Shown piece by piece: positions 17,439-59,281 of a stretch of 64,000 bases of DNA (position 1 is its first letter; every line of letters starts with the position of its first letter). Below the pieces are notes generated by a model. It had not been told where the DNA came from. It was given only the letters and a program-made list of their open reading frames with translations, and did no database searches. The stretch covers positions 2,215,355 to 2,279,354 of the forward strand of contig NC_134030.1 of assembly GCF_964204645.1 (NCBI RefSeq), written 5' to 3'. Source of the stretch: Tubulanus polymorphus (lineage: Eukaryota > Animalia > Nemertea). A program made the position numbers and the translations under genes.

Positions 17439-17526
<88 letters not shown>

Positions 17527-22349: not shown

Positions 22350-25092
22350 ATGGCGCCAGTATCATTTAAAACGATTCCATTGTTTTATCTAGTTGTTGTA
22401 AACATTATTCAAACGAGTGAGTATTCTATTAACTGTAGGAGTTTTTACTGTGAACGTATTTTGTTTACAAACAAATCAATATATTTCAATTCACGAATTG
22501 AATGAATGATTCGCGCGGCCGCCGGTTAAAAAACAACCTACGACAGACGGACCGGCCCTCCTCTCGCCGGTTGCTGAATATATACTGCCTATGTCGTAGC
22601 TGGTTTGGTTTGTTAACAGTAAACATATAGAGTGACAGTGTATGAGTCTTCATATATTCAGTTTTCTGTATTGTCACATAGAGACATAGAGTAGACAGAG
22701 TGTGGGGTGGTAGACGGTCCTCCTTATTACTGAGATTACGTATTTTACCGAGATGACATGAAATATAACATATTTATTCATAACTCATCTCGGTAAATTA
22801 CGTCATCTCGTTAATAAGGAGGACCCGTGGTAGAGCCCGTTCATTTACACTTGAAGCAAAGCAGAGTCTGTTCAATTGATTAGTAATAAATGATACTTAT
22901 ATGCATATTTGTTTGGGATGCTGTTATGGAAAGACAGAGACAGAGACAGAGATGTCATGATTGCAATTACAAATATAGGCCTAAAAATTGTATTGGAATA
23001 GTATCAAAAATATAGGCGCGGGCCTACACATCAATACATCATCCATGATCTAGGCAGCTTTAAAGACTATTAATAAGAATTAGCTGTTCAAGTTGTCGGA
23101 ATCCAGTTGACGAGACAACTGGCTTTAGTGTCATAATTGTTGGACTGTTTCTCCTTTTTTCCAGGTTATGGATTATCGACGAAAGCCAAAGTATTCCCGA
23201 AACAGGTTCAACTATTCCGCGATGAATCTGTAAACGTTAGTTGTCGACTGACGGATTTTCCTCCGAATACGCACCCGGTCTGGCGTATCGACAGTCAAAC
23301 CCAACCGATAAACTTCAACCACGATTGTATGGCGTACCCGATGAGTTCGTTCGGTTCGTTTCCGATCGAATCGTTATCGGTTACGTGTAGTCCGGGCGCT
23401 GATTTAAATGCCGGTGGCTCCCTCATGTGGTTGAATATGACGGTTAAAACTAAAGGACAGTGGTACAGTAATGGCCGACCGATGTTCTACTGCGCGTTAC
23501 TCGCTAATCCTGAAGGTGTTGATGTCACATTACTCGGTATGTGGTTCGTTTTTTAAACAATTAATTTACCAATATCCTAAGCTTACTTGAAGTCCCGGTC
23601 CTGGGGCAAGTTTGGTATTAACTTTAACCCGGGGTTAACTCAATTGAAAATGAATTTGGTTAGTTCAAAATAATACCAGCTTGAAAACCTGACCCAGAGC
23701 CCAGTTTCATAAAAAGGTTTAACTCTTAAATCGATTTAATTTCTTCATTCAGTTTATCCTAGGCTTTAATCATTTTTGTGAAACTGGGCCCAGGACCCAA
23801 TTCCATAGAGCTCCTTCAAAGTCCCTCTGAAATAATGGACCTATATGCTAAAGCTACTTGGAGTTGAGTCTTCTGTATTTTGCTCATTTGTGTAAGTGTT
23901 GCTCATTTGTGTAAATGTTGCTCATTTGTGTAAAAGTGTGTAAGTAATTTGAAGAAGGCAACATAATTCAGAAGAGTAGACTGAGACAGCTGCTGCTGCT
24001 GCAGCTGTCTGATTGTGCTCTTATTCTTTATACAAACTCAGCTGAATATCTTGATATTTGAAAGAATATAACTGAGCTGTTTCCAATTCATGAATGCGAA
24101 GAGAGCAAATCTTTTTCTCTTTAGTTGAACCAAAATTTGTAGCTTATTCAACCAATTTTGGTTACTACACATGATTGCGGAAACCCTTCACTCCGTTATA
24201 TTATATTATCCCTGCATTCAAGTTATCACCTGTTTTGGTAGAAGGGCCCTATAGTTCCACATTCATAAGGCTTTCTACAATTCCGATTGTTAACGATGAT
24301 TTTCTGATGATTTTGAGTTGTGTTTCAGATCGAGTAACGACTGGTCAACTCGTCTCTAAACCGATGGTCAGAAGCGATCAGACTCTAAAACCTGAGGTTC
24401 AAATTAAATTCACTTGCGACACGGGAACTAATAATAACGAATGTCAATATACGAGACCTACGATTCAATGGATAGTCGGGGTACGTTTAATTTCATCATT
24501 TTAGAAACGTATTTGGGTATGCACTGCACATTATCATTATCACTTGTCCACTGGGCTAGTGCAGTTTTATGTCTCCAAGTTTTCCCAATCGATACAACAA
24601 ATGGACTGCTTGTGTAGGGCAAGTAGATTTTTGAGGGAGCAAGTAAAATTTCAGGGCCGGTGGCTCTTATTCCTTAGATCAGACCCTGTGTTTGGGTATG
24701 CACTGCACAGTAGACTGTGCGTTTGCATCAAATCTCACAGGGTTTATGCAAATTCCAGAGCACTCGGAGAGACATGAATTGGGAGTAGGATCATTTTAAA
24801 CATTCTGTCACTTGAGGCATGCAATAATGAGCTCGGGCTACACTGTAGTTGCATTATCCTCAATACGTGGACTTGATTCAATTTCTAATTGGTTTACAGC
24901 AAAAAGAAATCACGGAAGGCGTAGTGAATAATCCTGTAGATTGCGGAGGAAATCCGCCGAAATACCGAACATCCAGCGATATAAACATCAGCGGTGACCA
25001 GTTCAACGGAGTTCAGGACGTAAAGTGCGTCGTTAAAATGAAGGATAGAATCGATGAATCGGCGACTAAAACTATTACAGTCAAATTTCCAG
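22350..25092 (+). CDS. 5' module of an Ig-domain surface protein: signal peptide + V-like Ig + second Ig; continues to a downstream exon
   Basis: Exons 22350-22416 (MAPVSFKTIPLFYLVVVNIIQT, gtgagt donor), 23165-23536 (VSC..PVW..MFYC), and 24329-24480 + 24900-25092 (FTC..IQW..VKC). Ends KFP-G|gtaaga in phase 1 with no stop. Confidence 0.82.
22715..22826. mobile_element. 112-bp MITE with ~40-bp TIRs and an 8-bp target-site duplication
   Basis: ggtcctccttatta...taataaggaggacc flanked by GTGGTAGA at 22707-22714 and 22827-22834. Confidence 0.82.
23695..23793. mobile_element. Short MITE of the abundant CCAGTT..AACTGG family
   Basis: Inverted termini gcccagtttca ... tgaaactgggc. Confidence 0.6.
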
Positions 25093-27184
25093 GTAAGAAT
25101 TTCAATCTGTGTTTCAGTGGAAGATGAGCCGTGTGAACCTGGTGTCAAATCTGTGAACTTGAAGACAAATAGTACAATGTTGGTTAAACTAGATTTTATT
25201 AGAAATTACAAGTTTTTGCCGCTAAGTGCAATGTTGCAAAAGCTCTAGATTTCTATCAAAATCAGTGAACACCTACACAGTACCTTTACCGGTAAAATCT
25301 ACCTGTATTTATATAGTACTGTGTCCTATTGGACTGAGAGACTCTCAACAAAGATTATACAACGATTCTTAGTGAATTGCGCACATCTTTAAAACGGTGA
25401 TTTCGATGCTTGTGTTTTGTGTGAAATGAAGTTTGAAGTTTGCTCCTGATTTAAGATACGTTTTGACTTGTTTTGGGTGTAATCGTGGTTTATGGTTGAT
25501 AGTAATCTGAGGTGTGGTTCAATAGGATTAGTATCAGTCACTGTTCACACAGGTTTAGATTAGAGATTAATGTTATAATATCTCGCAGTGACAGATATCA
25601 GCCCCGCCCCTTATACGCAATCACTGTGTAATAATTCACTGTTTAACATGCTTTCATTGTGGTTTATCAGTTATTACTCGATGACTCATCATAATCGCAT
25701 AGAAAATCATCTGGCCTAGCTGAAATTGTAAAATTTCTCGCTTAAACCACCATTGATAAAACACTATATCTGTGTTGTGACGATAATACAAAGCGAATTC
25801 CACAGTAATAACGAAAAACAAAGTCCGAAAATGTTTTCTAAGAGCTGGTAGTTTATTCAATGTTTCGACTTTATTCTCATAGTCATATTCAGGGAGGGCC
25901 GACTTAGAACATTGTAGAAACGTCGAATAAACTGCTAGCTCTTAGAAAACACCATATTTAAGATTAAGTGAGATAGGTTTACTAGTAGTAGGTTGTATAT
26001 TGGCCAAAACTGATGATCATGACTAATGCCAACAACTTCCTGGTTTTGATATAAACTGTTACATTTTAATTGTATGCTGAGATTTCTGTCCTATTTTAAT
26101 TAATTACTAATTTTGACCCGAAGTCAATAATAACATCATATAAAACAGCATCGACATTCCGGGACGTTTGACATTCCGGGACAGTTGTGATTGAGTTAAT
26201 TTGTAATATGTATCTGATTACACTCCGTTACTATTTTCGTGTTAGTCGCAAATTGCTTAATACAAAAAAAAAGTGAACTCAGTAATTTATATGAATGACT
26301 CTGTTATATATGTACGTGTATAGTGTAATAACAGGAACTCATGATTTCTATATTCTGTGAATTACTAGATGAACCTTCACCCTCCGTGATCTCACTGTAA
26401 TTTACTTCACGATCCTGACCCAGACAAACAATTACCCCTATATATAAATTTGTTTATTGACCATTTCATTTGTAACTGATCCTTAATACTAATACAGTAT
26501 GATTAATCCTGTTGCTTTGGTAACCACCCTCACAGGTTTGGGGCTCTGACTGTAGATCGTGGAAAAGTCTGGGAATTGGAATTTTTGGTATTTTGTGTTT
26601 CTGGTAACGAGTGGCACATGCATCCCTCACTGAGGAAGGATATCATATAAATTAATGAGGGATTCATGGAAATATCTTGGAATTTTGTATTCCTGTAATC
26701 TGTAAGAACCTTGGATAACATTTTAGAATGAATATTATATGCCTCTATTGAAGTGAGAAGGGTGGATACAGTTTTCTGTTGTTATATCGGAAGTTTTAGG
26801 AAGCAGATTAGGTTTTTTTAGATACTCTCGCAGGAAAACGTGATCTATCTTCATGAAATCAGTCTCTGTCGGTCGGTTATTAATAATAGATGATTAGAGA
26901 AATATATCGTATTCATCATTAATCTATGAAATACAGACCGGTCTCTAAATACTCACTCATTACAGAGAACAAAAACAGCACTGCACAATAACAGGCTACC
27001 AGGGCTGGAAATATATATAACAACATAAGACCAACACCATAAACAAATCCTTAATATAATATTTTTAACCTGGAAAAAATATATATGTTTGAAGCAGTGC
27101 AGCTTTATCTGAAAGCTGTGAGAAATTTTTTTTTATTCATAATTTTTACCGAGAAAATTCCACAAAATTCTCACCCAGGTCGCC

Positions 27185-27368
27185 ATTAACCCTAGCCCTA
27201 GGTCACCAGTTGCACTAACCCTAGCCCCACCGGGATTAGAACTTCGGTTCTCTAGCTTTCAAGGCCAGTGCTCTAACCACTGGGCCATATAACTCTGATG
27301 GTTATCACAGTTTAGAAGTTTGTCTTATGTCAGACCAGTGTACAGTGACCAATTAGGCGTGATGATCT
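27185..27368 (-). mobile_element. Dispersed repeat containing a tRNA-derived segment and AACCCT(A) motifs, copy 1
   Basis: Reverse strand reads tggcccagtggttagagcac...gttctaatcccgg (A/B-box-like); similar to the copies at 43662 and 53990. Confidence 0.6.
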
Positions 27369-27615
27369 ATTCATTCCCTGATTACAGGCCTTTTATGAAT
27401 TTTCAATTGCATTTCTATATTCTAAACTAACTATATTACAACCAACAAGGTTGTCTTTAAGACTAAAAGCTGGAATCTAGAAACTATATTCTATATAGAT
27501 ATATATTTGAGTTGATATTTTAGAAATTTGAAATACAGTGTTTCCAAGCGTGAAGATTTGATAATACAATCAACGATAATCTTTACAAACTATGATGTCC
27601 TGTGAGTCCTACTAG

Positions 27616-27765
<150 letters not shown>

Positions 27766-29156
27766 AAAGTACTGTATCAGCAACTCATCTCAGGAAGTGG
27801 TCTCATATAAAATACACAGGTTTCCATGGTAATCTATATTAAAACCTGAGGTTACCTTTAATGGGGGCGGCAGATCAAACACTTTATGTCAAAAATGATC
27901 GATCAGTTTTTGAGATATTTAATGAAGATGTTTGAAGATGATGTGTACGTTAAACATGAACTGATTAATTGTTTGATGGTGTTAATTGATGGGGTTTGAT
28001 TATCAGTTTCATTACAGCAGTCTGATATAGCACACAGTGGCCTGACAGGCCTAAAGTAGTCTTGATACAACTAAACAGTGGCCGGGCAGCAGTCTCAAGT
28101 CTGATACAGTAGTCTTGTAATGGCCTGATAGGCCTACAGTAATCTGATACAGTAGTTTGTAGTCTGATTCTGTAGTCTGAAACAGTAGGTTTCTATTGTG
28201 GGATGCAGAGGTTTCTAGTCTCAGTCACAGATCATTGTAGCTATTGTTATAATGTCACACGCATCACCGCGCGCTCTCCGCGCTCTCTCTCTCCTCGTCA
28301 AACCCCTGCTTCTATTTATAACTGATCTATCTATTGATCCGTAGTCAGGCTGTAATCGTATTATCCCTACCCGGGTTGGACACAGCTTGCGCGTTGTCTT
28401 GAGGTTTCTTTCTATTAAATCATTGTCTAGTGGCTGTTCGCGTATATCGATTTTATACACTAAAAATTATCCATAATTTCATCATCATCTACAGACACAG
28501 AGACGTATATAGATTATTCATTTGACGTCTGTTCTTGTTGTTGTATAATATATTGCTATTAATATATTCCATTTATTCATTTAGAATAGGTAAATAAACC
28601 TGTCTCATTTGTATATAATTATATTCCACTCAAAGCTGCTGATGTTCTGCTGCGGTTTAATTTGAAAAGCAACAAAAATGGACAGCATCCAGTTTCACAG
28701 TAATGAATTAAGAGTTTCATTTTCGATGAGTCAAATCAGAACGGGGTCGGTCCGGGATGGATCCAGTTTCACTGTTAGTTGAAGAGTTAACTCTTCGTTT
28801 AAAATAAGTTCATTTTCAATTTTCCTGCGTCAAATCTTTACTTTCAACTGTGGAACTGGGTCCTGAAATTTAGTAACGATCTAGCAGTGTAACTAAGACT
28901 AGGATGGCGTACTATGTACGCGGTCACTTACTCCTCTAATGCTGATACTGTATGACATTCTCATCGGGTAAAATTGATGTTTCGTTTTATTATGATTTAT
29001 AGCTCTGACGACGATCAGAACTTGGATAATCTATCATCGATTTGTTTTTCGATTTATTGATAGCTCGTTTGATGCGTCTTTTACAAACAGTTGATGTTCG
29101 ATATAAGCAAAACATTTGATACGTGTCCGTGTACTAGTCAAATCCCTACACTAACG

Positions 29157-29815
29157 AGGAACCTCTTGATAAGAAACAGCCCTCACTGAGGATATATTAT
29201 AATTTAATCAGGGAATTTGAATTTTTGGTGTGTTGTCCTCCTGCTAGTGACGAGTGACACAAGGAACCTCTTGATAAGAAACAGCCCTCACTGAGGATAT
29301 CTTATAATTTAATCAGGGAATTTGAATTTTTGGTGTGTTGTCCTCCTGCTAGTGACGAGTGACACAAGGAACCTCTTGATAAGAAACAACCCTCACTGAG
29401 GATATCTTATAATTTAATCAGGGAATTTGAATTTTTGGTGTGTTGTCCTCCTGCTAGTGACGAGTGACACAAGGAACCTCTTGATAAGAAACAACCCTCA
29501 CTGAGGATATCTTATAATTTAATCAGGGAATTTGAATTTTTGGTGTGTTGTCCTCCTGCTAGTGACGAGTGACACAAGGAACCTCTTGATAAGAAACAGC
29601 CCTCACTGAGGATATCTTATAATTTAATCAGGGAATTTGAATTTTTAATGTGTTGTCCTCCTGCTAGTGACGAGTGACACAAGGAACCTCTTGATAAGAA
29701 ACAGCCCTCACTGAGGATATCTTAGAGTTTAATCAGGGAATTTGAATTTTTGGTGTCTCGTTTGTCTTGCTGGTGATGAGCGACACAAGGAACCTCTTGA
29801 TAAGAAACAGGATAT
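29157..29815. repeat. 105-bp tandem array (~6.3 copies) with dispersed monomer relatives near 26570-26680 and 41835-41940
   Basis: aggaacctcttgataagaaacagccctcactgaggatatc... repeats with a 105-bp period. Confidence 0.92.
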
Positions 29816-30944
29816 CTTGTAATTCAAACGGGGAATTTTTGGTCAAGGGTCGGGGAATTTTGGATTCTCTGATCTGTTAGGTCCATGTGTATATGTATAG
29901 ATGGGATTTCATATCATCACAACACAAAGAATTGTAGGGGCCTGTGTTGAAAGCCTTGTTTTCTGTTTCTAGTTTCAATAATGCGAACCTGTTAAAGGAA
30001 TTTATGATTAGCCTTCGTTATGTTTGACATGGTCGAATGCCTTAACTGTAAAAACAGATAACGATAGTCTCGTAAATTCAGGTTTTACAATTTCTATTTG
30101 TTCTGGGCTCGACGATTGAAAATGCTGGCATAATATACCGCATTCGACATGGCAACTTATGATATCGTAGTAAAATTTCTATTTGGTCTGTCTGGGCTTG
30201 TTGTTAGCTTTAAAAAACTCCTATATCAAGATCAACATAGCAACTTGAGATAGAGTTATATTTGTAAAGGAAGGTTTGTTTGACCAAAACGTGCTCACCT
30301 GAGGGGCCATTTTGGACGCACATGTGCGTTTATTCAGTCTAAAACTGCGGGACGTATTCAAACCTAGGAACGGGAACATATGTCCACTGTGGTCGTTATA
30401 GCGATATGTATATGACTGTATGAGATCATAGATCTACGGACAATGAACAGGTTTTAGAGTATTTACAATGTAAAATAATGCTTTCAAACATCTGTCGCCG
30501 CAGTCAGTTCCATTCGTCGTCTCGTGTACATTCTCGAACAGAAAGAGATCGATTGTTTTCAACGCTCGTTGTTCATGTAACATCCCTTTATTAGGAATTC
30601 GGGATCAGCTATTACACGTCCTCTAGAATAAGCCACGGTTTCTAATGCTTCTTTAAAAGCTGTTACACGAGGCTTTTGTCATTTTGAGAAGCGGCATTAT
30701 ACCCCTGTAGTGGCTTCTCATTGAGCAGAGCTTCATTTTTCTGATAAAATCAGTTTTGTTTTTTCATGGTTGATAGTAGCGGTTATGATCTATTGGGAGA
30801 TTAAGCCCAGTATTTCTACGCGGTATGCTGAACATTCAGTTCAGTTTCTCCTCACTATTTTCTCTGTCAATTATGATGTATAGATACTGATTGTCCTAAC
30901 ACTACATTATCTCTATCAGTGAGTTCAGTGATATTTACGGCATC

Positions 30945-31078
30945 CAGATTCTGCAGTGTACAGTAATGTGCACCTCAATCATTCCTGCTCAGATTCTGTA
31001 GTGTACAGTAATGTGCACCTCAATCATTCCTGCTCAGATTCTGTAGTGTACAGTAATGTGCACCTCTATCATTCCTGG
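30945..31078. repeat. 45-bp tandem repeat, 3 copies
   Basis: cagattctgtagtgtacagtaatgtgcacctcaatcattcctgct. Confidence 0.9.
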
Positions 31079-33649: not shown

Positions 33650-33845
33650 GCTAAGTGTAAGTCATCATTTTGATAAGTCGTCACATTACTGAAGTCATCT
33701 CTATTCATCTCATTCTAATTCAATTTACTAAGCGTAAGTCATCATTTGGATAAGTCGTCACATTATTGAAGTCATTTCTATTTTTGAGTCTCAATTTGTA
33801 CATTCTAATTCAATTTACTAAGTGTAAGTCGTCAGTTGGGTAAGT
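33650..33845. repeat. Internally repeated dispersed element, with relatives at ~45010-45210 (inverted) and ~50340-50410
   Basis: Shared taagtcatcatttggataagtcg and tctatttttgagtc motifs. Confidence 0.6.
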
Positions 33846-39517: not shown

Positions 39518-39633
39518 CCTGGACCCAGTTCCACAGTTGTGAGTTAGAGTTATCTCTGAGTTAAAATTAGTTCATTTTCAATGAGTTAACTCAGGGTCAA
39601 ATCTTAACCACGAACTGTGGAACTGAACCCTGA
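39518..39633. mobile_element. MITE of the CCAGTTCCACAG..CTGTGGAACTG family (relatives near 28760, 35180, 37580, 46880, 52910)
   Basis: Inverted termini acccagttccacagtt ... aactgtggaactgaacc. Confidence 0.72.
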
Positions 39634-40271
39634 TGGTTTAGCCAATGGTCAGTGAAATAGAAATGTGTTTAAACTTAAGTGTTTGTATGTTCCACTTTGG
39701 AATGATAATAGAACATATATACCTAGAATTAACCAAAATTATACTTAATCACCCAATAAACAAATTAATAGTCTTAATTCTGGAGAATTAAATTTAAAAT
39801 GTTGTCTTTTCTAAAAGTAATATAAAGATCTTATCATAAATTTTTGAAAGGAGCTTTAATAAAATTCAATGCAATATTTCCAGTTCATAGACTTTTTGTG
39901 GCGACATTTTCTGGTTTTATATACGGTGACCCTCGGGTGGCCCCCCCTCAATTAGACGTATATTGACACAGGTTTACTACCTGTAGATGTGTTTGGTCAT
40001 TATGATTCTACTAATGGAGCATTCACTGTTTAACGTGTTCAAACTGGATGAATTAATAATATGACATTGTTCATTTGACGTGGTCAGTGGATGAACTCTA
40101 AAATGGAGTTTCTCATTATTCTGGGCACAATTGTAGGAACTAATAGCTTAGAGAGCCATTTGTAAGATAAACAGTACCGATATAGGAGGAGTCTATAGTA
40201 ATTGGGATATTGTCTGAAAGTGATGCAGACACTTCCTTGAAATTTGACTTTTTCTTGAAAACTTCTTATAT

Positions 40272-43661: not shown

Positions 43662-43856
43662 TAACCCTTAACCCTTGGGTTAATCCTCATTACATAACTC
43701 TAGCCCCCAGCGGGATTTGAACCTGGACCTCTTATTTTCAAATCCTTTGCCCTAACCACTAGACCATCCGTGCTTTGATAATTATCAAGGTCTCGAAGTT
43801 TGTCCAGTCAGTGTTGGTGACCAGTTGGCTGTGGTGACCAGTCAGCTGTGGTAACT
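43662..43856 (-). mobile_element. tRNA-bearing dispersed repeat, copy 2
   Basis: Reverse strand reads tggtctagtggttagggc...ggttcaaatcccgc; flanked by aaccct motifs and ggtgaccagt repeats. Confidence 0.6.
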
Positions 43857-46310: not shown

Positions 46311-46408
46311 CAGGACTCGAACCCGCTTGTCCCTGAGCACTGATAGTGAATGCTACAGCTGGACTAGAACCCGCTTGTCCCTGAGCACTGATAGTGAATG
46401 CTACAGCA
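46311..46408. repeat. 48-bp tandem duplication
   Basis: Two copies of ggact(c/a)gaacccgcttgtccctgagcactgatagtgaatgctacagc. Confidence 0.8.
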
Positions 46409-47400
46409 TCACTCCTCACACCACTGTCTGAGTTACTGAGGCAGCTTTCTGAAAAATTTGTCTGATTTCTGAAAACTCTTTGATGCCTTCTGGCAATTTC
46501 ATCCTCTTCATAGAAAATTTGTTTGCAGTTGCAAACCTTTGTGACTTGATATGATTTTATTTTTGTAAATAAAAGTTTTAAGAAATGGATGAATACCTCT
46601 TGTGGGACAGACGTGTTTGAGGTGGTTAACTATCTAGATGTTTGTAATCAGTAATCCCGAATGTTGGCAGAAAATCGAAGGGTTGATATTGAATCGAAGG
46701 TCGATTTTATAGAATTATTTTGCCTAAATTTTTGCATGTTGCTTTTATATGATATATCAGATGCTTTTAAAATGCTAATCGGTTTCTTATTTTATTTTTC
46801 CATCTACAGAAGCAAAGACTGGTGCAGGTATAGTCCGCTTTTTATAATTATCTAAATGTTGTGTCTCGTTAAAACCGAGGATTGAGTTCCACAGTTTCCT
46901 GGTTAAAGTTGAATCTATCAAAGTTAAAATCAGTTGATTTCCAATGTTTTTTTAACTCTATAGATTCAAATAAAACTGTAGAACTTGCTCCAGAATAATA
47001 TTCTAGATTTTACTAATATCCATTCTCATTTTCCTATTTTCAAACTCGATGTATGATAAATTGATTATTTTTCCCCACTTTTGTTAAGTTGGCTGGCAGC
47101 AATCTCTTTATTTTCAGTATTTCAATCCAATGCTTTCCCTTCATGTATAACCTCCACCTGAAACTCAGTTTCACAGTCTGTGGCTAGTTCGACTCTAATT
47201 ACAAAGATTAATTTATTTTTTAATGTTCGAGTCAAATTCTAACTCACAAAACTGTTGAACTGAGTCGACATGTTTTAATGTTTGTTTTATTTACACATTT
47301 TTATATTTATTTATATCAATGAATGTGTATATAGTATATACGACTTGTGACTTCAAAATTTTGATTTCTGTTTTGTTAAAAATGTATTGTTTGTCCATGT

Positions 47401-47660
47401 ATTCCACAGTTCAGAATCCAGTTCCACAGTTCTGGATCCAGTTCCACAGTTCTGGATCCAGTTCCGCAGTTCTGGATCCAGTTCCACAGTTCTGGATCCA
47501 GTTCCACAGTTCTGGATCCAGTTCCACAGTTCTGGATCCAGTTCCACAATTCTGGATCCAGTTCTGCTGTTCTAAGTAGAGATTTGACTTTTGAGTTAAA
47601 ATATTGAAAATGAACTAATCTCAACAAGAGTCAAACCAACAGCTCTGGAACTGGATCCGG
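47401..47660. mobile_element. MITE whose left terminus is amplified into a 20-bp minisatellite
   Basis: gttccacagttctggatcca ~8 times, then the MITE body ending ctggaactggatcc. Confidence 0.8.
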
Positions 47661-49190
47661 AAACATGAATTATTTGCAAGCAAGTGGATACAGCGAACAG
47701 TTTCAAACAAAAATCTATATTTGAATATTTGAAAATGTTTTCCGCTGTTTAATTTGTGTTTATCACGAAATATTGAAATCCGTTTCAAACATTTTTTTCG
47801 GTTTCGTTTTTAAAGAAAACAACAAAAACGACACGAATAGTAAAACTGTACATGAGAAACCACAAACTGGCGCCAGTACTAATAAAGGTAACGCGTGAAA
47901 GATTCATTAGAGACAAATTGAAATTGAAGGTGGTTTGTTGTGTTGCAGTTACCTCTTTTGCTTCTTTCCTTGATGAAGTCTATAACTACGGTTTTAGTTA
48001 TAGACGATTCAAGTGTTTTAGCCGGCTGTCAATCATTTCTTTAAATCCCGCCACCTTTTTTATTTAAAACTGAAACCTTAAAACTATTTCAAATAACTGA
48101 TGATGTAGAATCCCACGATAAGATAGAAAAACGAGTTTGAAATGTTTCCTGATCGGCTAAAAATGGTTGATTCAACGTTTCAATTTCATCCTCATAGCAA
48201 TTAGAGTGGTCTCTTAGGATACAAGATCCTCTATTTAAACAGTATCCCGCCGCGTCATATTTGGTTTGCCAGTTTGTCAGTTTGCCTTTGATTTATGTTT
48301 TTAATCAAGAAAACGCCGGAAAGAATTAGATCAAACATTTTCCAATGGTGAAATCTATGAAAATTAGTTCCCTCGCGATACTGCAGAAATCAAGCCGTGA
48401 ATAGCCTTGAAGGAATACCTTGTTTTCCTTTCTTTTTGTGGAACCTTCTATATCATCATAACAACATGGACTCAGAGAATTGGTTAACCCAGGCCAGGGT
48501 TACCCCGGTCCTGGGTTACCCTGGTCCTGGGGCTGGATTATCCCACCCCTGGTTTGGTATTTTAATGATTGACAGTATTTTTACGCAGTTAGTAGTTTAA
48601 CACATTGATAAACTCCTCGGTTTTCGAGCCGGTGTCTGATTCGACGTAGTTCAAACGAATCATTCAGATATTTTTTTCAGGTTTTGGGTTTAGTTTTTTT
48701 TTCAGTTATAAACCGTTGTTGTTTTAAGTGTTGTACGTTTACTGTTTTATTAGTCAGTAGTTAGATAGTGTTTACAGTATTCATGTGTTTTCATATTCAA
48801 TTAATCCCTGGTTCATTCAAGTTTCATGTAAACCAGCGATACAACCACGTAATCTTTCAATCCTTTCGTTTCATTTTCGATGCGGGATTACGACTTTTGT
48901 CGAATACTTTTCTTTTATTGCTTTAGTAGAGAAAATATATCGGTATTATTGGTGGGCTTGTGTAATCAAATTCAGGTCGTTAAAGTTTATTATCACGAGG
49001 CTAGATTCGATGATTTGTATAGAATAATAGCGTATAGGTGAATAGGTCAAGTCTAGAGTCCTTCTCATTGCTATAACTGGTTCCGAAACTAGTTGATTGA
49101 ACCATGGACTCTTGAACGCAGCGCGTCGTCTATTGCATACAGGCAGTAGGAAGAAGCAGCTGTTGTGTGTGTGGTGTGTGTATATCCAAT

Positions 49191-50916
49191 ATGTCGATGA
49201 TGGGATTCACACGGTTTTCATTCCGCTCGTCCGCGATGCTTCTAAATTCTCTACTCGTAGCCGCCGTGTTCGCGACCGTTCTCGCTCAGGATGATGGTAT
49301 GAATTTTATACGGCGTCGATTTCGTGTTAATTAAGGGACGAATTAGATTTGAATTTCTAGACGGATTTATAGGATTTATATATCTGTGCGAGTGTGATGA
49401 TCACATGGGACTAAAGTAGTAGTTAGTCTACGGATTATGCAGTCCACCATGTATATGTGTAGCCTATGCTTGAATGTAGATTTTGTTAGCGATATTCAGT
49501 TATTCCGGATGGAGTGGACGGAGTCGTTAGTGTATGGAATGATGAATCAAATCGTTGGACGATAAAGACTGCTTCACACGTGTGTGCGTGTTTAAATTGT
49601 GTGAAATAATGAGGGCATGTGGGAGGGAGAGGAGGGAGGGAGGGGGGAGGGAGGGGGAGGAGATCATTAACCGTATCACTAAAACCAAAAATACATTAAG
49701 ATAGACGTAAATCCTCTTTATGTATTTTTGCTAAAACCTAACATCATTTCATAGAATGAATTTTCATTCTAAGTCTGAGATGAAATATGTTTTTTGGACG
49801 ATGGTCGAGAGTTTAGTTTCAATAGTCTTTTTCCATATTTCATATTAGATCTAGTTATCAAAATCTCGTTAGAACAATAGATTTATATCACGTCAATCAT
49901 GGGTCATCGTTTCAGTTGGGTTTATATTCTCTTTGAGGCACACATTGCACACTGTAACATGCTGATGTATATATATATGTATTGAATTTGGCTGATGGGA
50001 TTTAGAGTTTGATTGAATGAATTTGGTTGTGGGTCGCACACAAATTACTGATCGTCCGGTTCTGGCGGTGTATTGGAACAGCTCTAATCTAATTACATTG
50101 ATTTATATATCGAATTCTAATCAAAGAGGTTACGATAACCTCTCTCAGTGACCTCTTCACGAGGCTGTTGGAGGTCGGTCGTAATTGCCTCGCCGGTGCT
50201 AATTGCTTCCATAATCAAAAACCTAATTGACAAAAGGTACCAAGAGATTTTCAGATACGATACCATAAAACTCATTTAAAAGTAATCAAAATATACTTAA
50301 GTCGTTAAGTGTTAATAATGACTTAATTGATGAAGTCGTTTAAGTCATCTCTATTTTTGAGTCCCAATTTGCAATTCAATTAGATAAGCATAAGTCGTAA
50401 TTTGGATAAGTTGCCAATATATCGACCATCCCCTACTCTTACTAGGATGACTTGGATGAGTTTGGCTGTAAGGATTAATAATTTCGCTCCTATTTTCTGA
50501 ATTCGTTAACATCGAAAAACTCTTGGTAGCTCCGTAGAATTGACTGACTCGGTTGCAAAGTTTACGTGAACGTCCGGAATATTTTTGAAAAGAAAATTCA
50601 TGATAATTTATGTAAATTTATGAAAATATATGTAAATTTCGCAACCAGTCTTTAGACGAATCAATCCTAACCTCATTGGACACTAACCCCGGCTTTTTTC
50701 TGCCTCTTGTTATTTGTAGGTACCGGTGGAAGTTCTTCACCTCACAACCAGGCGGCGCCACTAACGAGCCCCGAGATCGCCGGTATCGCGATCGGTGCCG
50801 CGGCCGCCGTCGCGCTCTTACTCATCGGGTTAGTCATCTTCTTACGTAACAAACGCGTTCAAAACGAAAATAACGGACAAAAGGAGGCGCTGGCCGAAAA
50901 AGCGCAGGACGTGTGA
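49191..50916 (+). CDS. Two-exon 100-aa single-pass membrane micro-protein (signal peptide, ~22-aa ectodomain, TM, short tail)
   Basis: Exon 49191-49296 MSMMGFTRFSFRSSAMLLNSLLVAAVFATVLAQDD-G|gtatga (phase 1). Exon 50720-50916 follows tttgtag and encodes GTGGSSSPHNQAAPLTSPE-IAGIAIGAAAAVALLLIGLVIFL-RNKR...AQDV*. Total 303 nt in frame. Confidence 0.78.
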
Positions 50917-51699
50917 AAGAAGAACATCGACGCGAAAACAAAAATCCCGACCAACTTTTTACAAACGATTAAAAAAAAACACCTTGCGTTAATTTACACG
51001 TTTTAAAACACGTAGAATATTCGTGATGATCTGAGAAAAAATCTTGATACCGAAATGTGGAATTTCGTCGCTGTAAATCGCGACGGCGTTAATTTAGAAA
51101 TGTTCTCATCGCTCGGACGATGAATACTGCGAGATCGATATTTTACGAGATTGTTTTATCTCTGTTTTCATTCCATTTTTTAAAAATGAAGACGACAAGA
51201 AACTCTCGGATGGTAACGAACGACGGAGACTTATTTTAAAACGCGCGAAGAAGGATTCGGTCGTCTCTAGCGTTCAGTCAGATATGTACTCTTATTAATC
51301 AGTGGTCGTCTGTTAAAGGGGGTTTAAATGCGACGAGGCCCGCGATCAGTGATCATCGAACCCCCCGTTTTAAGTTTTGATTTTGTATACAACGCAAATA
51401 TGTAAATAAATCTTTCTTGAGAAATTTTACACAAAGATTGATCGAGTATCTTCGTCATCAAATGTTTATTCTTACGTTTTCGATCAGCATTTTGGTTTAG
51501 AGGAGAATTCTCTACTGATCCGCCTTCAGTCTCTATCTCTCTCGTTAGACGCACCTCTGATTAATATATCTAATTAATAATTAACGTTATCTAATTAATC
51601 TTGATTGTTTAATTATCAAGCTTTTGCAAGTGGAGAAACAGTGTTAGTCTGTCCCGGGATGATAGAGGTTTTAAGTTAGAGAAGACTACACTCAAGTCA

Positions 51700-51897
51700 G
51701 AAACAACAGTTTAACTCAGAGATAACTGTTTAACTCAGAGATAACTGTTTAACCCAGAGATAACTGTTTAACTCAGAGATAACTGTTTGACTCAGAGATA
51801 ACTGTTTAACTCAGAGATAACTGTTTAACTCAGAGATAACTGTTAAACTCAGAAACAACAGTATAACTTAGAAAAAACAGTTTAATTGAGAGATAAC
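51700..51897. repeat. 19-bp minisatellite
   Basis: taactcagagataactgtt, ~10 copies. Confidence 0.9.
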
Positions 51898-53989
51898 TCG
51901 GAAGATAATCTGAATAATCATCACAAGTTTTCACGGTGAAAAGAGATCCAACTTGGGCAGAATCTACTTAACTGCTTAGCTCAGATATCGCTTGCAAGTT
52001 AAGACAAATTTTGTCCTAAAAGACCTCACCCGGGATTTACTAACACTGCTTTAAGACACAGGCCAGGTTACGCACTTAACAAGGTAAACCTCATGAATCA
52101 ATGATTAATCTTTGCTTTCATTCTTAATTCATAATTCTTTAATCGAATCTAATTCCCCCTTGCATTCGAAAAAAATAAGAATTGATTCAAGTTCTCTGTG
52201 GAAAGGAGTCGTGGAAAAGTATCCGTTTTTAAGCGAATGATAAGGATTTGAAGAGGTTTATCTCATTGGCTGCTGATCTGAGGAATGTTCACACTATTTA
52301 ACACCAGATTTCAAACAGTAGTAAACTCTACTTTACTCGGTGGTATAGTATTAGTAATGTATTTTCTCATACACCACAACATCTAGAATATAATCTTTGC
52401 ACTCTATATAAAATGAGGCATGTTTATTATTATATAGATGGAATAATGAGGTTTCTGAATGTACAATTACAAGTTATTACCAATGGGATATAGTCGGTGT
52501 ACCGAGAGTTAGGAGGAGTTCTTACTTGGTAAAAGTCGCTGAATTTTACTCAAAATCTTTTCCCTTTAAAGCAATTGATGCTAACGCCACCGAGTGACGT
52601 ACAGTTTACTGTCTACTGCAAGTTCTATGATATTCTCTTGATCTTCATGCTCTGCTTTAGAGATGATTGTAATCGACACATTCACTGACAGTAGCAACTG
52701 TCATTAAACTCAGAATTATTAGGAAGAAATGAATTTCGTTCATTGATTGAAATTAATATATATATATATATATATATTTTAGGCGTTGATGTTTTAGTGT
52801 TTTAGTATCGAGACCGGATTTCAATGGCTGCATTTGAAGAATCTGAGAATTTTATTCGAAGTTATTGAGTCTCAGTAAATCTCATGAATCTAGTGAATCA
52901 GTCATCTGGATCTGGTTCCACAGTTGTGAGTTAATTTCAGTTAGAATTAGTCTGTTTTCAATAAGTTGAATGTTTACCCACAACCGTCGAACTGGTTGCA
53001 GAATCGTACGGTCTCAGTGTCTTGTAGTTTTCAATGTTTTGTCGGTTTAGATTTTGGGATTTTGCAATTATTTTACCGCCTATTATTTGTTCATTTAAAA
53101 ATGCATTTTCTATTTTAACGAAAAAATATGAAAGTTTCTTTAACGCGATGTAAATACGTTATCTTTAAAAGAAAACTAGAAAATTCTAGAATTGCTTTAT
53201 CAATTTTTCAAATGAAAAAACTTGATTAATATTTCTATAAGATTGATAATAAAAGATTTGATTTTCAGTTAACTCGTAATATTTGAATATTTGAAATTAA
53301 CTGTCGTCATATTCAACGCAAAAACAATCGCAAACAGATCCAAAATATGCGGTCACAAGACTTCGTACTTAGCGTTAGAATGGGGTACGGTGATGCCGCC
53401 TATCCCACCAGATGGCGTAACGAGACTCGGTCTTATGTTGTCAACGTTAGTTCATTATCGAAATCAACTTTGAACGCATCAGCGTTGAAATTCCCCCATT
53501 CAATTCCAAAGTCGTCTCTAGCATAGGATAGAATAATTTCATCAATTTGGCTACTGTATTTAGAAATCTGTGGTTCCCGGTTTTTGTAGACAGGGTTTTT
53601 ATGGGGTTCCAATCAAAATTGGGATAATGTTATTAGCGTAGAAATATTACCCCCAGTCTTTAGTCTTATTATTAAAATGAAGAATCAGTTTTTTTCTGAT
53701 GAGAGTACTTGGTTAGCTCAATGTAGTTTGTAAGTTTCGTTTGCTCAGCTCAGTTGAAGTCATCCACGCGGCGAACCATGACATGGTCTGTATGTGTATT
53801 TTGCGTAGGTTTTCACTATGGAATCTGTGAGGAATTATCGACCATCCAAGCCGGACTTGTAGCCAGGTTTCAGGGCCAAAAAAGCACATATTTACGGCAA
53901 TTTTCATGGGTAAAAAATTGAAAGACTTGTGATTAGGTATCGGAAAAAGATTTATGCTTTCAATTCTTTACCCATGAAACTTGCTTCAT

Positions 53990-54165
53990 AACCCTAACCC
54001 TAATGTCAGTCCCTCCCGGGATTTGATCCTGGGTCTCTCTCTTTGGAAGCCAGTGTGCTAACCACTAGACCATTGAGCTCTAGTGAAATAAGTTGTTAGT
54101 AAGTTTGTCTGGTCAGTGTTGATGACCATTAATCCATGGTGACCAGTCAGGTGTGTCGACTGATT
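53990..54165 (-). mobile_element. tRNA-bearing dispersed repeat, copy 3
   Basis: aaccctaaccctaa next to reverse-strand tggtctagtggttagcacactggcttccaaag...ggatcaaatcccgg. Confidence 0.6.
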
Positions 54166-55360
54166 GTCCTACTCACTAACATGCTTCAACTACGAGACTT
54201 TCCAATGAGGCTCATTACCAAATAAATCCATTATTCAATGGATCTTTTTAATGAGGTAGAACAATTTTAAAATGTTTTAGCTGATCAGAAACAAGGTTAT
54301 TAGGGGTTTTAGGGTGATGTTAAAATGACGGAATCCTGCATGGCTACAACCAACAAAGTTCCATTTATTTAAGAAATGTATAAATTATTTATTTTTTGTG
54401 CGTGTAGCAGCATTCCTAGTTCGATTGTGTGTGATAATTTTGAAATGAACCCTCAGTATTATTAAAAGCTCGCTTGCCGCAGTCTGCAATATCTATTTCA
54501 CTTGCTTGGCTCGTGTTAGCGCGTTCTCACGAGAATTCAAAAAATTATTTTACATGATTCATCTGGTTTAGGCTGTCATGATTTCTAGGAATATCATTAT
54601 AAGAACATTAGGGTAGAGATTATAATAGACAAATAGCAGTCGTAAAGCTGAAAGTAGAAACAGAAATTCACAGAATCATTAGAAGAATAACAACATTTAT
54701 GCTTCTAAGGTTGCGGGCAATAGACTTCATCTGGATTGATGGAAGTTTTCTACCCAAACCCTAAATATGTTGTTTTACTTCTAGTGATTGTGGGTTTTGC
54801 TTCTGACAGCATTAAGGTAATTTAGAAATACGAATTTTTAACATTTCTAATAAAAGCCTTTTTCCTAAAACGCTTGTCAACACTAAGAATGAAAAAATCT
54901 TTTTATCAGATTCGATTACCATGACTACTGTATGACGCGGGTTGTCATGGTAATGACTGTTTTTGTAAATACACGTATAGCCCTCTATATTCTGATGTCT
55001 GTAAATTGTTCGAAAAAAGATATTAACTTAAAAAATAAGAAATCGCTTTAAAAAAAAAAATATTTGTGGCTTGAGAAATGATGAAAGAAATGAATGGGAA
55101 TAAATTTTATATAAAATTTGTGCAGATATTAATTTATAAACGCTTTGAATTTTAGTGAATGTATAGTTGTAATAGTTCGGTGCTGATTGATGTAAATCGA
55201 TGTAGTCCCATGCTGATATGTATCCAATACATCATTAAACATGTATTTTAGTTGTTGTGATGTAAATATAATGTCATACCCCTCCGCGCTCGCAGCATTA
55301 GCATGTGTTAGGGTCATGATCTCCGTGTTGATATTTTATGTGATGGAGTTGCACAACAAA

Positions 55361-55404
55361 ACAGAGCAATGATCAAAACATAACAGTTTTGATCATTGCT
55401 CTGT
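55361..55404. repeat. Perfect 19-bp inverted repeat (hairpin)
   Basis: acagagcaatgatcaaaac-ataaca-gttttgatcattgctctgt. Confidence 0.85.
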
Positions 55405-57118
55405 ATCACTTGTTGGTCACCTGTTGGTTAACTAAGCAACTGAAGCGTTAGGGCTGCAATTGCTGATTTGGTTAGAGTCAACCATTGGATAGCAGACACA
55501 GTGAGAATTGAAAGTTTGTTATCACTTATATCCACTGGTTAACTCCAACCAGCTTTTGAGTAACTGGCTCCAGATTTGTAAATCACATCAAATACTTGAG
55601 CACCTAAGAATCGATGTCAGTTTCATTCATATATAAGCTTTCCTCTCTGTCTTGAATTGTGCCATATAAATGTGGAAGAACTAATAAACAAGTTTGTATG
55701 CAATATTAATGTATTATATTGATGTATTTTATTTACCAGATACCTAGTAAACCATTTGGGTTCAGAAAAAAGCACATTGATTCACAAGATTTTGTCATAA
55801 AAGAAGAAAATAACTGATTGATAAGTTATATTTTGCCATCTTTTAGGGTTTCTCAAAATTCCAAAAGCTCGATTAGACTTAAGCAAACAGTGGTATTATT
55901 ATTGTTAATTTGTGAATGCGAGTTAGATTTTAATAATACAATACCGCTGTTTAATCCTATAGTATATATGTATTGAAGTTATCATGAGATACACAACGAA
56001 CCCACAGATGTACACAGCTTGGGCTTAGCGCATATCCCGAATGAAATGTATTTAATATTACATCGTGTATTTATTTATGTTAAAATTATGCGAAGAGCAG
56101 CCCTAGAAATTAAAGCATTATAGCATTTTTGTTTGAAGACATGTTCATAGCTGCACAATATTAGACTATTGATGTATCTTGTCGTTAATGAATATTCACA
56201 TTTCAACTCAAGTCAACAAACATCCATTTCTAGCCATAATACATTTGTAAATACGTAAGAGTTAAAAACCCATCATTTCTCTCCCTCTCTCTCTATCAGT
56301 ATCTATTACTTCTAACGAGTCAAAATTCTGATCTTCCATCTTATTATTTAGAGTATGAATAATCTGAAAAATTCCAGTAAACCAGGATCAAAGTTTTTGA
56401 AGTTGTGACACAAATATGACTCTGTTATCAACTTCTGGACTCGGTTCAGAAATCAATAATCTAAAGCTCAGATATGTTTTGGAAACACAGATCACCTTTT
56501 AGTTAGACTGCATTAGTTGAAATTGATAAATTTTCCAATATTTCAATTCTGGAGTGAAATAATGACCAACAGCTGTGTGGATCTGATCGAGTATATTCAG
56601 TGAACTGCAGAGAATTCTATTCTGAATAAATGATGATCAGAATTTTAAAAGCTTTAGATTTGCAGCTCATTATTAATATTTACTTGCACTCTCTTATCAT
56701 TTTCATTCTGTGAAGCAAGCATGTCTGCCCCTCATATCTGCCCCTCATATCTACCCCTCATTCTGTCATCGTTTGTTTTACGTTAAATTTACCTGTCATT
56801 ATTGTGAACAAAATATTAAAGTAATTTTAAGTAAAATAAAGATAAAAAATCTGATGTAATCGATTACTTTTATTTCGTCGATTTTCTCGACTGTGCATGA
56901 TGAATATATTAGGTAGAAGTGAATGCATTCTCTACTCTGGACTACTCTGGACCATAGCAGAGGATCACTGATGTTGCTGAGAACAGAACAAACAGAAGAT
57001 ATGGAGCTACAGAGATGTCATCGACCAGAGGAATCTTGAGCAACAGACAGAATTCAAAATCAATCCCTCATATCTTATAAATTGCTAACAAGATTTTATT
57101 TTTTCAATTTATTTCTAG

Positions 57119-57244
57119 TTGACGGTTTGAGTAATATGAAGTTGATCGCGATTATTATTGGAACGGCTGCCGGTGTTGCTATAGTGACTTCGATTATTGT
57201 CGCCATCGTTTTACATTTGAGAAAACAAAAACTATCTTCTACAA
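57119..57244 (+). CDS. Transmembrane exon, symmetric phase 1-1 (VDGLSNMKLIAIIIGTAAGVAIVTSIIVAIVLHLRKQKLSST)
   Basis: Pyrimidine-rich acceptor ...tttatttctag; ~24-residue hydrophobic helix followed by RKQK; donor A|gtaggt in phase with the serpin exon. Confidence 0.78.
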
Positions 57245-57319
57245 GTAGGTATTTTATATTTGTGCGGGTCCTGTACAGTTGGAGTCCTTTATGATGCTAC
57301 CGTTTGGATCGATAACAAA

Positions 57320-57452
57320 CAGGGGCCGGTTGCTCAAAAGTTGGTTAGAGTTAACCAGTGGAGAGTTGATATGGTGACAATTGAAATTTCATTGTTACTA
57401 TGGTATTTAAAGGCCGGTTATTTTTAACCGATTTTTTAGCAACTGGCCCCTG
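57320..57452. mobile_element. MITE in the intron between the TM and serpin exons
   Basis: Inverted termini caggggccggttgct ... agcaactggcccctg. Confidence 0.75.
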
Positions 57453-57962
57453 GATGTTATAACAAATTTGGCATTATGTAAGAATGGTAATTTCATTGAA
57501 TTTGTATTGAGTAAGATTGGGAAAAAGTGTTCTCTGAAAAGTGTTAGCGTTGAGTGAGAAGTGGCATTGAAAAGGATGTCTTTATGACGGACTTCGATGA
57601 CAGTTCATTGTAAAAGTGCCCTGGACTTAATCTTCCCAATAACAGAAGTAATAGTGATAAGATGCTAGTATTAGGATGCCTTTTGTTTCCCAGCCGAGAG
57701 GCTAAAGGTTCAGAAACCTACAGGGTAGGAGGTCCTGGCACAGAGATTGAGATGAAGATGATTGTATATTATATAGTTTATAGCTTCGTAACCATTTCCA
57801 AAATTGTCAGTTAAAACTAACTCTAAATCTATAGAAATAAACCTAGAACTGTGGAATTGGAGTGTTGAAGAGTATTAAATTCTTGAGAGCTGGGGCTATC
57901 TTTATTTTGATATGTTGCACTGTTTTAGAATTGATTTTGACTCTCCCTCTCTCTTTCCACAG

Positions 57963-59281
57963 ATGACTTGTGCATGTCGCAGAAAGGCAAAAAGATGCGT
58001 AAAGCTTACGTTTCCGAAATGGAAACTCCGCAAGAGCAGACGGCATCGGTGGAAGAAGCGTATTTCCACGACATCGTCTCCGCGACAACTTTATTCGCTG
58101 AACGATTATATTCTCGAATAGCGATGATAAACACGGATTCGATGATTCTATTTTCGCCGTTTGCTGTCATGAACATGATGTCGGCGATATCGACCGGAGC
58201 TCGCAACGCGACCGCCGACGAGCTGGAGAAAACCATCCGAATAAACGCCGTCAAAAATCTCGATTTGAAATTCGAATCGTTGAATCGTCTGATCAACCGA
58301 AATCCGAACAATCGTAACTACACGTATAAACTAGCACAGGGAATGTTCGTCGCCGCGACGACCGAATTAACGCCGGCGTTTAAATCGTCCGCTCAACGGA
58401 ATTATCGTATATACGTGCGTTCGGTCGATTACCGAGACGGCAACCGACACGACGTACGACACGAGGTGAACGAATGGTGTCGTAACGCGGCCGGTATCGA
58501 TAACGTCGTCGATGTGGATGATATCCACGCGGATGTATCGATGTTATTGATCACGGCGATGTACGTGCACGCGACGTTTCGTAAAACGGACGTCGATCGC
58601 GTCAGTACGATGCCGTTCTCGTTCCCGGACTCGGACGTGCCGACAGACGTCCACGCCACTCATCTCCTCGGTTCGTTTCTCGTCGGATTCGATCACGGTT
58701 TAAACTGTCAGGTGCTCGATATACCGTTAGATAACAGTCCGTTAACTCTGTGTATATTATTACCGGATAAATCTGAGAGTTTAAATGACGTTGAGCGTAG
58801 AATAATAAACGGAGAGATCTCCGATAAACTGAGCTCGGTCACTAATAATCTATCTTATCGTCAGTCCAGTATTTATATCCCCGATATCCACTTATCGTAC
58901 GCGATTGATTTAGAAACGTACCTGTCTGGTTTAGGACTGGTCGGTGCGCTGACCGACGAGGCCGATTTATCCGCGATGACCACCGTCGTAGATATGGGCG
59001 ACGACGAAGAGACCGGTAACCAAAGCAACCGTAACGATAATAATAATCTACGATTGTCTCATTATATTCATTCGTTGCATTTCGACGTTTGCGACAAGAA
59101 TACGAAACCTCAAGAGGAGCGTTTCGACGAGGACGACGTGGAATACGTGCTCGTTTATCGCGTAGATCGCCCGTTTATGTTCGTAGTTCGACATCCGATT
59201 ACCAAGGAGATCGTAATAATGGGACGATCTGGTGAACTCATTTCTAAAGATCGTATCGCTTACCATCAAACCACATTATAG
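57963..59281 (+). CDS. Serpin domain encoded by one terminal exon; divergent, probably non-inhibitory
   Basis: Serpin motifs ILFSPFAV, GARNATADEL, LLITAMY, CQVLDIP, LCILLPD, ADLSAM and VDRPFMFVVRH...IMGR. Preceded by the strong acceptor ctccctctctctttccacag, phase 1. Stop TAG ends at 59281. Confidence 0.92.

Follow-up and report, generated by a model that had tools for sequence, protein, structure and literature searches.

Serpins are, to our knowledge, described as soluble proteins that are either secreted or located in the cytosol or nucleus, and literature phrase searches for membrane-anchored, transmembrane or tethered serpins returned no natural transmembrane serpin. In the teleost C1 inhibitor, two immunoglobulin (Ig)-like domains lie N-terminal to the serpin; the protein is secreted, carries no transmembrane (TM) segment and acts as an active clade G inhibitor; a literature search for its Ig domains returned nothing relevant. 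Here, we examine LOC141907865, a gene on the forward strand of a 64,000-nucleotide stretch of the Tubulanus polymorphus (Nemertea) genome (NCBI RefSeq assembly GCF_964204645.1, contig NC_134030.1, positions 2,215,355 to 2,279,354). This whole stretch is referred to below as the window, and positions are counted from its first letter. It is likely that LOC141907865 is one gene encoding a 748-residue type I membrane protein composed of a signal peptide, two Ig-like domains, a TM segment and a cytoplasmic serpin. RefSeq already lists the sequence and the gene model, under the label 'uncharacterized'; the new element is that the architecture has been recognised and checked. Its two folds are known, their combination in one protein had no earlier description, and it is seen in a single species.

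The gene model consists of seven exons, listed in Table 1 together with those of a nested gene. Without the micro-exon, the coding sequence amounts to 67+372+152+193+126+1319 = 2229 nt, every exon being open in frame and the split codons AGT, GAT, GTT and AAT containing 0 stops. The initial annotation of this DNA had given these exon coordinates, phases and stop-free frame correctly, as judged on the sequence, and tblastn of the RefSeq protein P0002 agrees, placing it on exactly the listed exons, with the product of exon 1 identical to its N-terminus. The same annotation had proposed a 742-residue product spanning a single 32-kb intron. The frame shared by the Ig-like domains, the TM segment and the serpin stands, being supported by P0002, by an RNA contig that spans the splice between the TM and serpin exons and by the layout of a paralogue, while the length and the single intron had to be revised. 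The RefSeq model XP_074653712.1 ("uncharacterized protein LOC141907865 isoform X1") has 748 residues, the six additional ones, EAKTGA, standing between KFP and VDGLS. They are encoded by the micro-exon, which divides the 32-kb gap into introns of 21.7 kb and 10.3 kb. The EAKTGA residues are found in RefSeq P0001 and P0002, and a degenerate EAKTGA pattern with AG and GT flanks had a single match in the window, at 46808-46829, with a chance expectation of 0. The micro-exon is preceded by a polypyrimidine tract and AG and followed by GT; its letters, as the next sequence after 25092 in the predicted spliced form, read AAGCAAAGACTGGTGCAG.

A second model, XP_074653713.1 (isoform X2 of LOC141907865, 671 aa), belongs to the same protein cluster as XP_074653712.1, as found by a search with the serpin exon (100% identity), and in both isoforms the Ig part is joined, via the micro-exon and the TM segment, to the serpin. 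An 18-nt exon combined with alternative isoforms is the kind of call that NCBI Gnomon makes from transcript alignments. Downstream of exon 4, a hydropathy scan of the plus strand from 25093 to 57119 revealed no coding-like TM exon besides the one starting at 50720, which has a signal-peptide partner of its own.

Table 1. Exons of LOC141907865 and of the nested gene LOC141907866 (positions in the window).
Feature	Position	Strand	Phase and donor	Content and relation	Basis
LOC141907865 exon 1	22350-22416	+	phase-1 donor A/GTGAGT	ATG and signal peptide, MAPVSFKTIPLFYLVVVNIIQT	read on sequence
LOC141907865 exon 2	23165-23536	+		Ig-like domain 1	read on sequence; tblastn with P0002
LOC141907865 exon 3	24329-24480	+	phase-0 end	Ig-like domain 2, first half	sequence and tblastn
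LOC141907865 exon 4	24900-25092	+	phase-1 donor CAG/GTAAGA	Ig-like domain 2, second half	sequence and tblastn
LOC141907865 micro-exon	46810-46827	+	phase 1 to 1	18 nt; codes EAKTGA with its neighbours	RefSeq and pattern search
LOC141907865 TM exon	57119-57244	+	phase 1 to 1	short outer stalk, 24-residue hydrophobic span, then HLRKQK	
LOC141907865 serpin exon	57963-59281	+		single exon; linker of about 45 aa, full serpin domain, TAG stop	
LOC141907866 signal-peptide exon	49191-49296	+	phase-1 donor	MSMMGFTRFSFRSSAMLLNSLLVAAVFATVLAQDD; P0003 residues 1-35; outside the Ig-serpin gene	
LOC141907866 terminal exon	50720-50916	+		stalk, TM and short tail; outside the Ig-serpin gene	
LOC141907866 alternative terminal exon (isoform X2)	51192-51216	+		7 codons; reached from an internal donor after 50828	

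The two Ig-like domains of P0002 display the Cys-Trp-Cys core expected of this fold (C49/W61/C132 and C176/W192/C240). An ESM Atlas model of residues 24-262 resembles members of the IgSF5, CADM, nectin and fasciclin-3 families with TM scores of 0.59-0.69 over about 200 residues, the Atlas features for the Ig module being 0.90-0.93. Together, the motifs and the Atlas model point to two beta-sandwich Ig domains. The best Pfam match of exon 2 is Ig_3, with E 0.046 and 14.7 bits, under the cut-off of 30; neither half of the second Ig-like domain had a Pfam match, and no homologues of the Ig module were found at similar length. Beyond the N-terminal h-region (TIPLFYLVVVNII), P0002 contains a sole strong hydrophobic span, residues 277-295 with a hydropathy of 2.54, followed by HLRKQK. 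A signal peptide, one TM span and a positively charged C-terminal flank predict a type I single-pass protein. Because the N-terminal signal peptide is combined with HLRKQK after the only TM segment, the serpin would lie on the cytoplasmic side. The initial annotation had placed it there too, and the RefSeq model accommodates this, with a single reading frame running through the signal peptide, the TM segment and the serpin.

Two paralogues of the Ig module are detectable in the genome, at C10:630354-630752 (about 31% identity) and C6:2676823 (about 27%), both of them weak. Common to the paralogues are an extra Cys pair, which is also present in the domain of exon 2, and a W-x-N-x-G-x-P motif. 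In the C10 paralogue, the last residues encoded by the equivalent of exon 4 are ...QITFQFFGS, and its donor is in phase 1. About 0.5 kb separates it from a 27-nt micro-exon, and 60 nt separate the latter from a TM exon, both of them phase 1 to 1, so that all three exons fall within 0.7 kb. This layout gives the order of the family (end of the second Ig-like domain, micro-exon, TM exon), which is the same order that RefSeq joins over the long introns of LOC141907865. Of the independent arguments for assigning the micro-exon and the TM exon to the Ig gene, we consider it the strongest. Since a phase match alone would be a 1-in-3 coincidence, support for the two long splices comes from such independent evidence instead.

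About 2 kb downstream of the TM exon of the C10 paralogue, two exons at C10:626347-627073 (L012 5948-6674, minus strand) resemble the halves of an SH2 domain, with a weak SH2_1 match (E 0.0017) and the motif FNELIDLVQHYRSNPL. If they were spliced to the TM exon of the paralogue, an Ig-Ig-TM-SH2 protein would result, and this family of two-Ig receptors may repeatedly carry globular cytoplasmic domains.

The predicted cytoplasmic part is a full-length serpin domain. Pfam PF00079 matches it with E 2.2e-54 and 185 bits over profile positions 2-366 of 370. The closest match in the PDB is SERPINB1 (E 6.8e-30), followed by MENT, maspin, PAI-2, ovalbumin and SERPINB9; all of these are clade B serpins of the cytosol or nucleus, and the domain is closest to this intracellular clade. 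An AF2 model calculated with an 18-sequence alignment reached pLDDT 82.5 and pTM 0.83, with low confidence in the linker, an insert, the reactive loop and the C-terminal tail. Foldseek searches with this model gave 4ga7 as the best match, with TM scores of 0.88-0.89 by target, and the top matches are serpins in the native state (0.83-0.90 by target), which is the fold predicted for this domain. Polymorphisms between the reference and the contigs of sequencing runs X2 and X3 comprise at least 12 synonymous and at least 6 non-synonymous changes in the serpin exon, which has 294 synonymous and 1020 non-synonymous sites. Among the polymorphisms listed, the ratio of non-synonymous to synonymous polymorphism per site (pN/pS) is about 0.14, which suggests that the serpin exon is under purifying selection.

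Whether this domain could inhibit proteases depends on its hinge. The hallmark of inhibitory serpins is a P17-P9 hinge of the form ExGTEAAAA, in which x is E, K or R, with small residues at P12-P9 (PMC8233489). In LOC141907865, the hinge aligns as D-K-N-T-K-P-Q-E-E and departs from that consensus, whereas EEGTEAAAA or a close variant is found in most of the 17 aligned relatives. A Pro at P12 together with Glu at both P10 and P9 makes insertion of the loop into sheet A unlikely, and we consider the serpin domain probably non-inhibitory. It could alternatively be argued that the architecture is real and the serpin active, acting at the inner membrane face as a clade-B-like guard against acid-cutting cytosolic proteases of the caspase or granzyme kind, as do SERPINB9 and CrmA. 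SERPINB1 and SERPINB9, both intracellular inhibitors, are indeed among the nearest relatives; the native-state fold is predicted at high confidence; the loop, counted by hand against alpha-1-antitrypsin, is of canonical length within one residue; and the acidic stretch DEDDVE of the exposed loop (RFDEDDVEYV) recalls serpins with Asp or Glu at P1. However, Asn replaces Gly at P15, P12 is Pro, P11 Gln, P10 and P9 both Glu and P8 Arg, where the published rule requires small residues at P12-P9, and an unbroken run of A, G, S or V occupies these four positions in all but two (P0009 and P0051) of the 17 relatives, most of which read GTEAAAA. An active guard is therefore unlikely.

Expression evidence was sought in the segment 53450-59400, with which sequencing runs X1, X2, X3 and X5 were compared; four sequencing runs of one study contain the serpin exon, and none is recorded as RNA. 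Run X1 has a flat depth of about 38, introns included, and is therefore DNA. Run X2 behaves as RNA: its 454-nt contig (record 12, depth 64) splices 57244 to 57963 at GT..AG borders, and its depth is 64-104 on exons versus 2-3.5 in the intron between these two positions. This splice places the TM exon and the serpin exon on one mRNA. Record 12 begins at 57117, which is the acceptor AG, while record 11, an unspliced contig coming from the intron, stops at 57146, exactly 30 nt further on. Such a break is what a branch in a 31-mer de Bruijn graph would produce, and it suggests a second, spliced path into the TM exon. The branch calls for an upstream path ending in AG, and both the micro-exon (...GCAG) and exon 4 (...CCAG) qualify equally, the two being indistinguishable by this signal. 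Nothing of the locus is present in the older, RNA-like run X5, which is no proof of silence.

Further upstream, run X2 covers 53466-57146 continuously. As the mean depth of record 12 is only 64, this abundant RNA cannot carry on undiminished into the TM exon; its end probably lies upstream of that exon, and an AATAAA is located at about 56846. The region 53466-57146 is single-copy according to the DNA run X1. Its RNA could represent a very long 3′ untranslated region belonging to the nested gene, a long 5′ exon or an RNA that codes for no protein, and Rfam and tRNA scans returned nothing that would explain a transcript upstream of the TM exon.

Several of these observations weigh against a single fused gene with a non-inhibitory serpin. 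Among the reads examined, which cover 53450-59400, none, and no contig, crosses 25092 to 46810 or 46827 to 57119. Unspliced RNA spans the 57119 acceptor in run X2 (record 11) and in run X3 (record 20, 57093-57243, depth 13.9), the unspliced depth at this acceptor in run X3 equalling that of the serpin exon. The mean depths of 116, 206 and 239 along the upstream RNA of run X2 exceed those of the serpin exon (64-104), so that some transcripts with the TM and serpin exons could have an intronic start. Evidence for the Ig fold consists of weak Pfam scores, Cys/Trp motifs and the Atlas model, AF2 having given an unusable pLDDT of 37 for the Ig module when run with no alignment, and the non-inhibitory call rests on a sequence rule. 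Finally, no orthologue is known, so that the architecture stands for one species so far and has no cross-species support.

A rival reading is that of two transcription units, in which the TM-serpin mRNA would come from an intronic promoter just upstream of 57119 and be translated from the ATG at 57137 (MKLIAIII...). The product would be a serpin of about 470 residues, anchored by its N-terminus and cytoplasmic, the Ig-fused form being a minor read-through or a chain made by annotation. In addition to the unspliced contigs, whose depth in run X3 (13.9) compares with 5-13 on the serpin exon, the depth in run X3 climbs to about 10 from 56833 on, and 57137 is the first in-frame ATG of the unspliced transcript, with A at -3; the positive charges following the TM span would keep the serpin cytoplasmic in this case too. 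Yet no RefSeq product of 240-766 aa consists of the TM segment and serpin alone, the sole cluster being formed by the two Ig-containing isoforms, and the contig break at 57117 suggests a second, spliced entry to the TM exon. With its phase of 1 to 1, strong polypyrimidine acceptor and outer stalk, the TM exon resembles the internal TM exon of the paralogue. The stretch from 53.6 to 57.9 kb is also devoid of any CpG-rich segment, unlike the two known gene starts in the window, and 56897-57015 contains several upstream ATGs with short open reading frames (ORFs). Two separate units are thus possible, though on the unlikely side.

It might also be supposed that the fused model is an annotation artefact and that the Ig module either ends locally, for instance as a secreted protein produced by read-through of the 25092 donor, or uses the exon at 50720. 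The latter is phase-compatible with both 25092 and 46827, the reads examined at 53450-59400 contain no junction for the long introns, and run X5 holds nothing from the locus. However, 50720, which the initial annotation had put forward as an alternative partner of the Ig module, turns out to be an exon of the separate nested gene LOC141907866. Because it has a signal-peptide exon and a RefSeq gene to itself, the joining of the Ig module to 50720 is rejected as a main form. The Ig module is absent from RefSeq proteins of 144-457 aa, the placement of an 18-nt micro-exon with no spliced reads to guide it would be very unlikely, and the layout of the paralogue predicts exactly a micro-exon and then a TM exon. 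An artefact is accordingly very improbable. Splicing of the Ig module to 50720 may still occur as a minor, phase-compatible isoform; no protein of 144-457 aa with the Ig module was found among 5.8 billion sequences, so a short Ig-Ig-TM isoform is not annotated.

Altogether, we assign a probability of roughly 0.6 to the whole explanation in which LOC141907865 is a fused gene whose product carries a tethered, non-inhibitory serpin module. The exons with their phases and domains, the splice from the TM exon to the serpin exon and the constraint on the serpin are shown by the data, and the two long splices, the topology and the non-inhibitory role are inferences drawn from them. The 748-residue protein would start with a cleavable signal peptide and expose two Ig-like domains of the nectin, CADM or fasciclin-3 kind, followed by a 6-residue stalk contributed by the micro-exon, a TM helix and a clade-B-like serpin inside the cell. 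Most likely, an ordinary receptor gene with the order Ig, Ig, micro-exon and TM gained an intronless intracellular serpin as its tail exon, the ordinary form still being kept by the paralogue. As the hinge is not expected to insert into sheet A, the serpin may serve as a membrane-tethered binding or scaffold module, with the acidic loop RFDEDDVEYV being a docking or cleavable element and not that of a suicide protease inhibitor. We infer from the architecture that the protein is a 'receptor'. It is decidedly improbable, in our view, that it is a new signalling receptor in which ligand binding or clustering by the Ig-like domains controls the tethered serpin as a conformational switch or protease trap; in such a scheme, a caspase-like enzyme, for example, might cut the acidic DEDD/VE loop, and recognition at the cell surface would be linked directly to the sensing or control of proteolysis inside the cell.

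If the fused gene with its tethered serpin is confirmed, the metastable serpin fold would have a novel use, forming the cytoplasmic tail of a surface protein of the Ig type. It would further be a clear case of lineage-specific domain fusion through exon capture and, for serpin biochemists, a natural test case in which to look for the partners of a tethered, probably non-inhibitory serpin at the inner membrane face.

Other features of the window include the nested gene LOC141907866, which lies within the second long intron and encodes a small single-pass membrane protein. P0003 ("LOC141907866 isoform X2", 79 aa) corresponds to its signal-peptide exon, which is located in a CpG-rich patch, followed by the start of the 50720 exon and by the alternative terminal exon. 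On the minus strand, a multi-exon gene at 8427-20897 stands head-to-head with the Ig-serpin gene. It contains at least seven Ig-like exons, one of which (20541-20897) matches Pfam ig with E 7e-5, as well as an exon that is FN3-like by eye (11951-12313) and a Tyr-rich tail exon (8427-8768), and it resembles a nephrin/Kirre-like adhesion molecule.

Repeats are also present. Within the intron separating the TM and serpin exons, a short element at 57320-57410 has inverted ends, CAGGGGCC...GGCCCCTG. Its word depth of about 30,000 in the DNA run X1, versus 38 around it, identifies it as a very high-copy repeat resembling miniature inverted-repeat transposable elements or short interspersed elements, and similar ends occur near 23580-23800 and 59320-59500. 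A tandem repeat with a unit of about 59 nt containing CAGTTCCACAGTTGTGTGGGTT lies in introns of both Ig paralogues (window 47319-47627; L012 8820-9240) and creates long spurious ORFs on both strands. On the minus strand at 27222-27294, a tRNA-like sequence scores 38 bits with the Rfam tRNA model and is called Ser(TGA) by ARAGORN; serine tRNAs are usually longer than its 73 nt, and it could be a pseudogene or a repeat derived from a tRNA. Next to it, 27602-27832 is occupied by a long (CTG)n run.

How the protein relates to known families was assessed with a HMMER search of P0002 against 1.84 billion representatives, in which 7890 serpins were matched and the best 150 examined. The best match besides P0002 itself has E 3.5e-38 and 23% identity, and the best-scoring stretches listed all fall in the serpin part of P0002 (residues 309-748). 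None among the best 150 of the 7890 shares the architecture; the long ones are tandem serpins or bacterial fusions. The best matches in both sequence and fold are the clade B (ov-) serpins, namely SERPINB1/leukocyte elastase inhibitor, MENT, maspin, PAI-2 and ovalbumin. Like them, the serpin part of LOC141907865 lacks a separate signal peptide, has a predicted cytosolic location and keeps the conserved C-terminal DRPFMFVVRH block. Clade B proteins are soluble and single-domain, whereas in this case a TM helix on the N-terminal side would tether the serpin to an Ig ectodomain; the serpin shares 22-25% identity with them and differs by an acidic, Asn-rich insert of about 17 residues before strand 5A and by its non-consensus hinge.

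The teleost C1 inhibitor shares with LOC141907865 the presence of two Ig-like domains and a serpin, in the same order. In the nemertean protein, however, a TM helix and a basic stop-transfer sequence stand between the two parts, which would leave one part outside the cell and the other inside, and the serpin resembles those of clade B; the protein does not fit the pattern of a secreted one in which the Ig-like domains run continuously into the serpin, as in the C1 inhibitor type. The two are independent fusions and not homologous architectures. On the ectodomain side, IgSF5, CADM1/2, the nectins and fasciclin-3 are likewise type I membrane proteins, and the Atlas model of residues 24-262 bears a structural likeness to them. 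These adhesion molecules show no significant sequence similarity to LOC141907865, and their cytoplasmic tails consist of short motifs and not of a 440-residue globular fold.

Among the bacterial fusions, P0135 combines a zf-HC2 anti-sigma-like N-terminus, a hydrophobic span and a serpin, while P0152 joins sigma-70 regions r2 and r4 to a serpin. Like LOC141907865, these fusions link a serpin through a hydrophobic span to a signalling-type domain across the membrane. They differ in being prokaryotic, in having no Ig-like domain, in carrying canonical Pfam serpins and in their presumably reversed topology, with the serpin outside. Within the group of serpin matches formed by P0009, P0043, P0135 and P0152, two end in a C-terminal hydrophobic tail that suggests a glycosylphosphatidylinositol or tail anchor. 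These four proteins are other, unrelated routes by which a serpin has been attached to a membrane or to a signalling domain.

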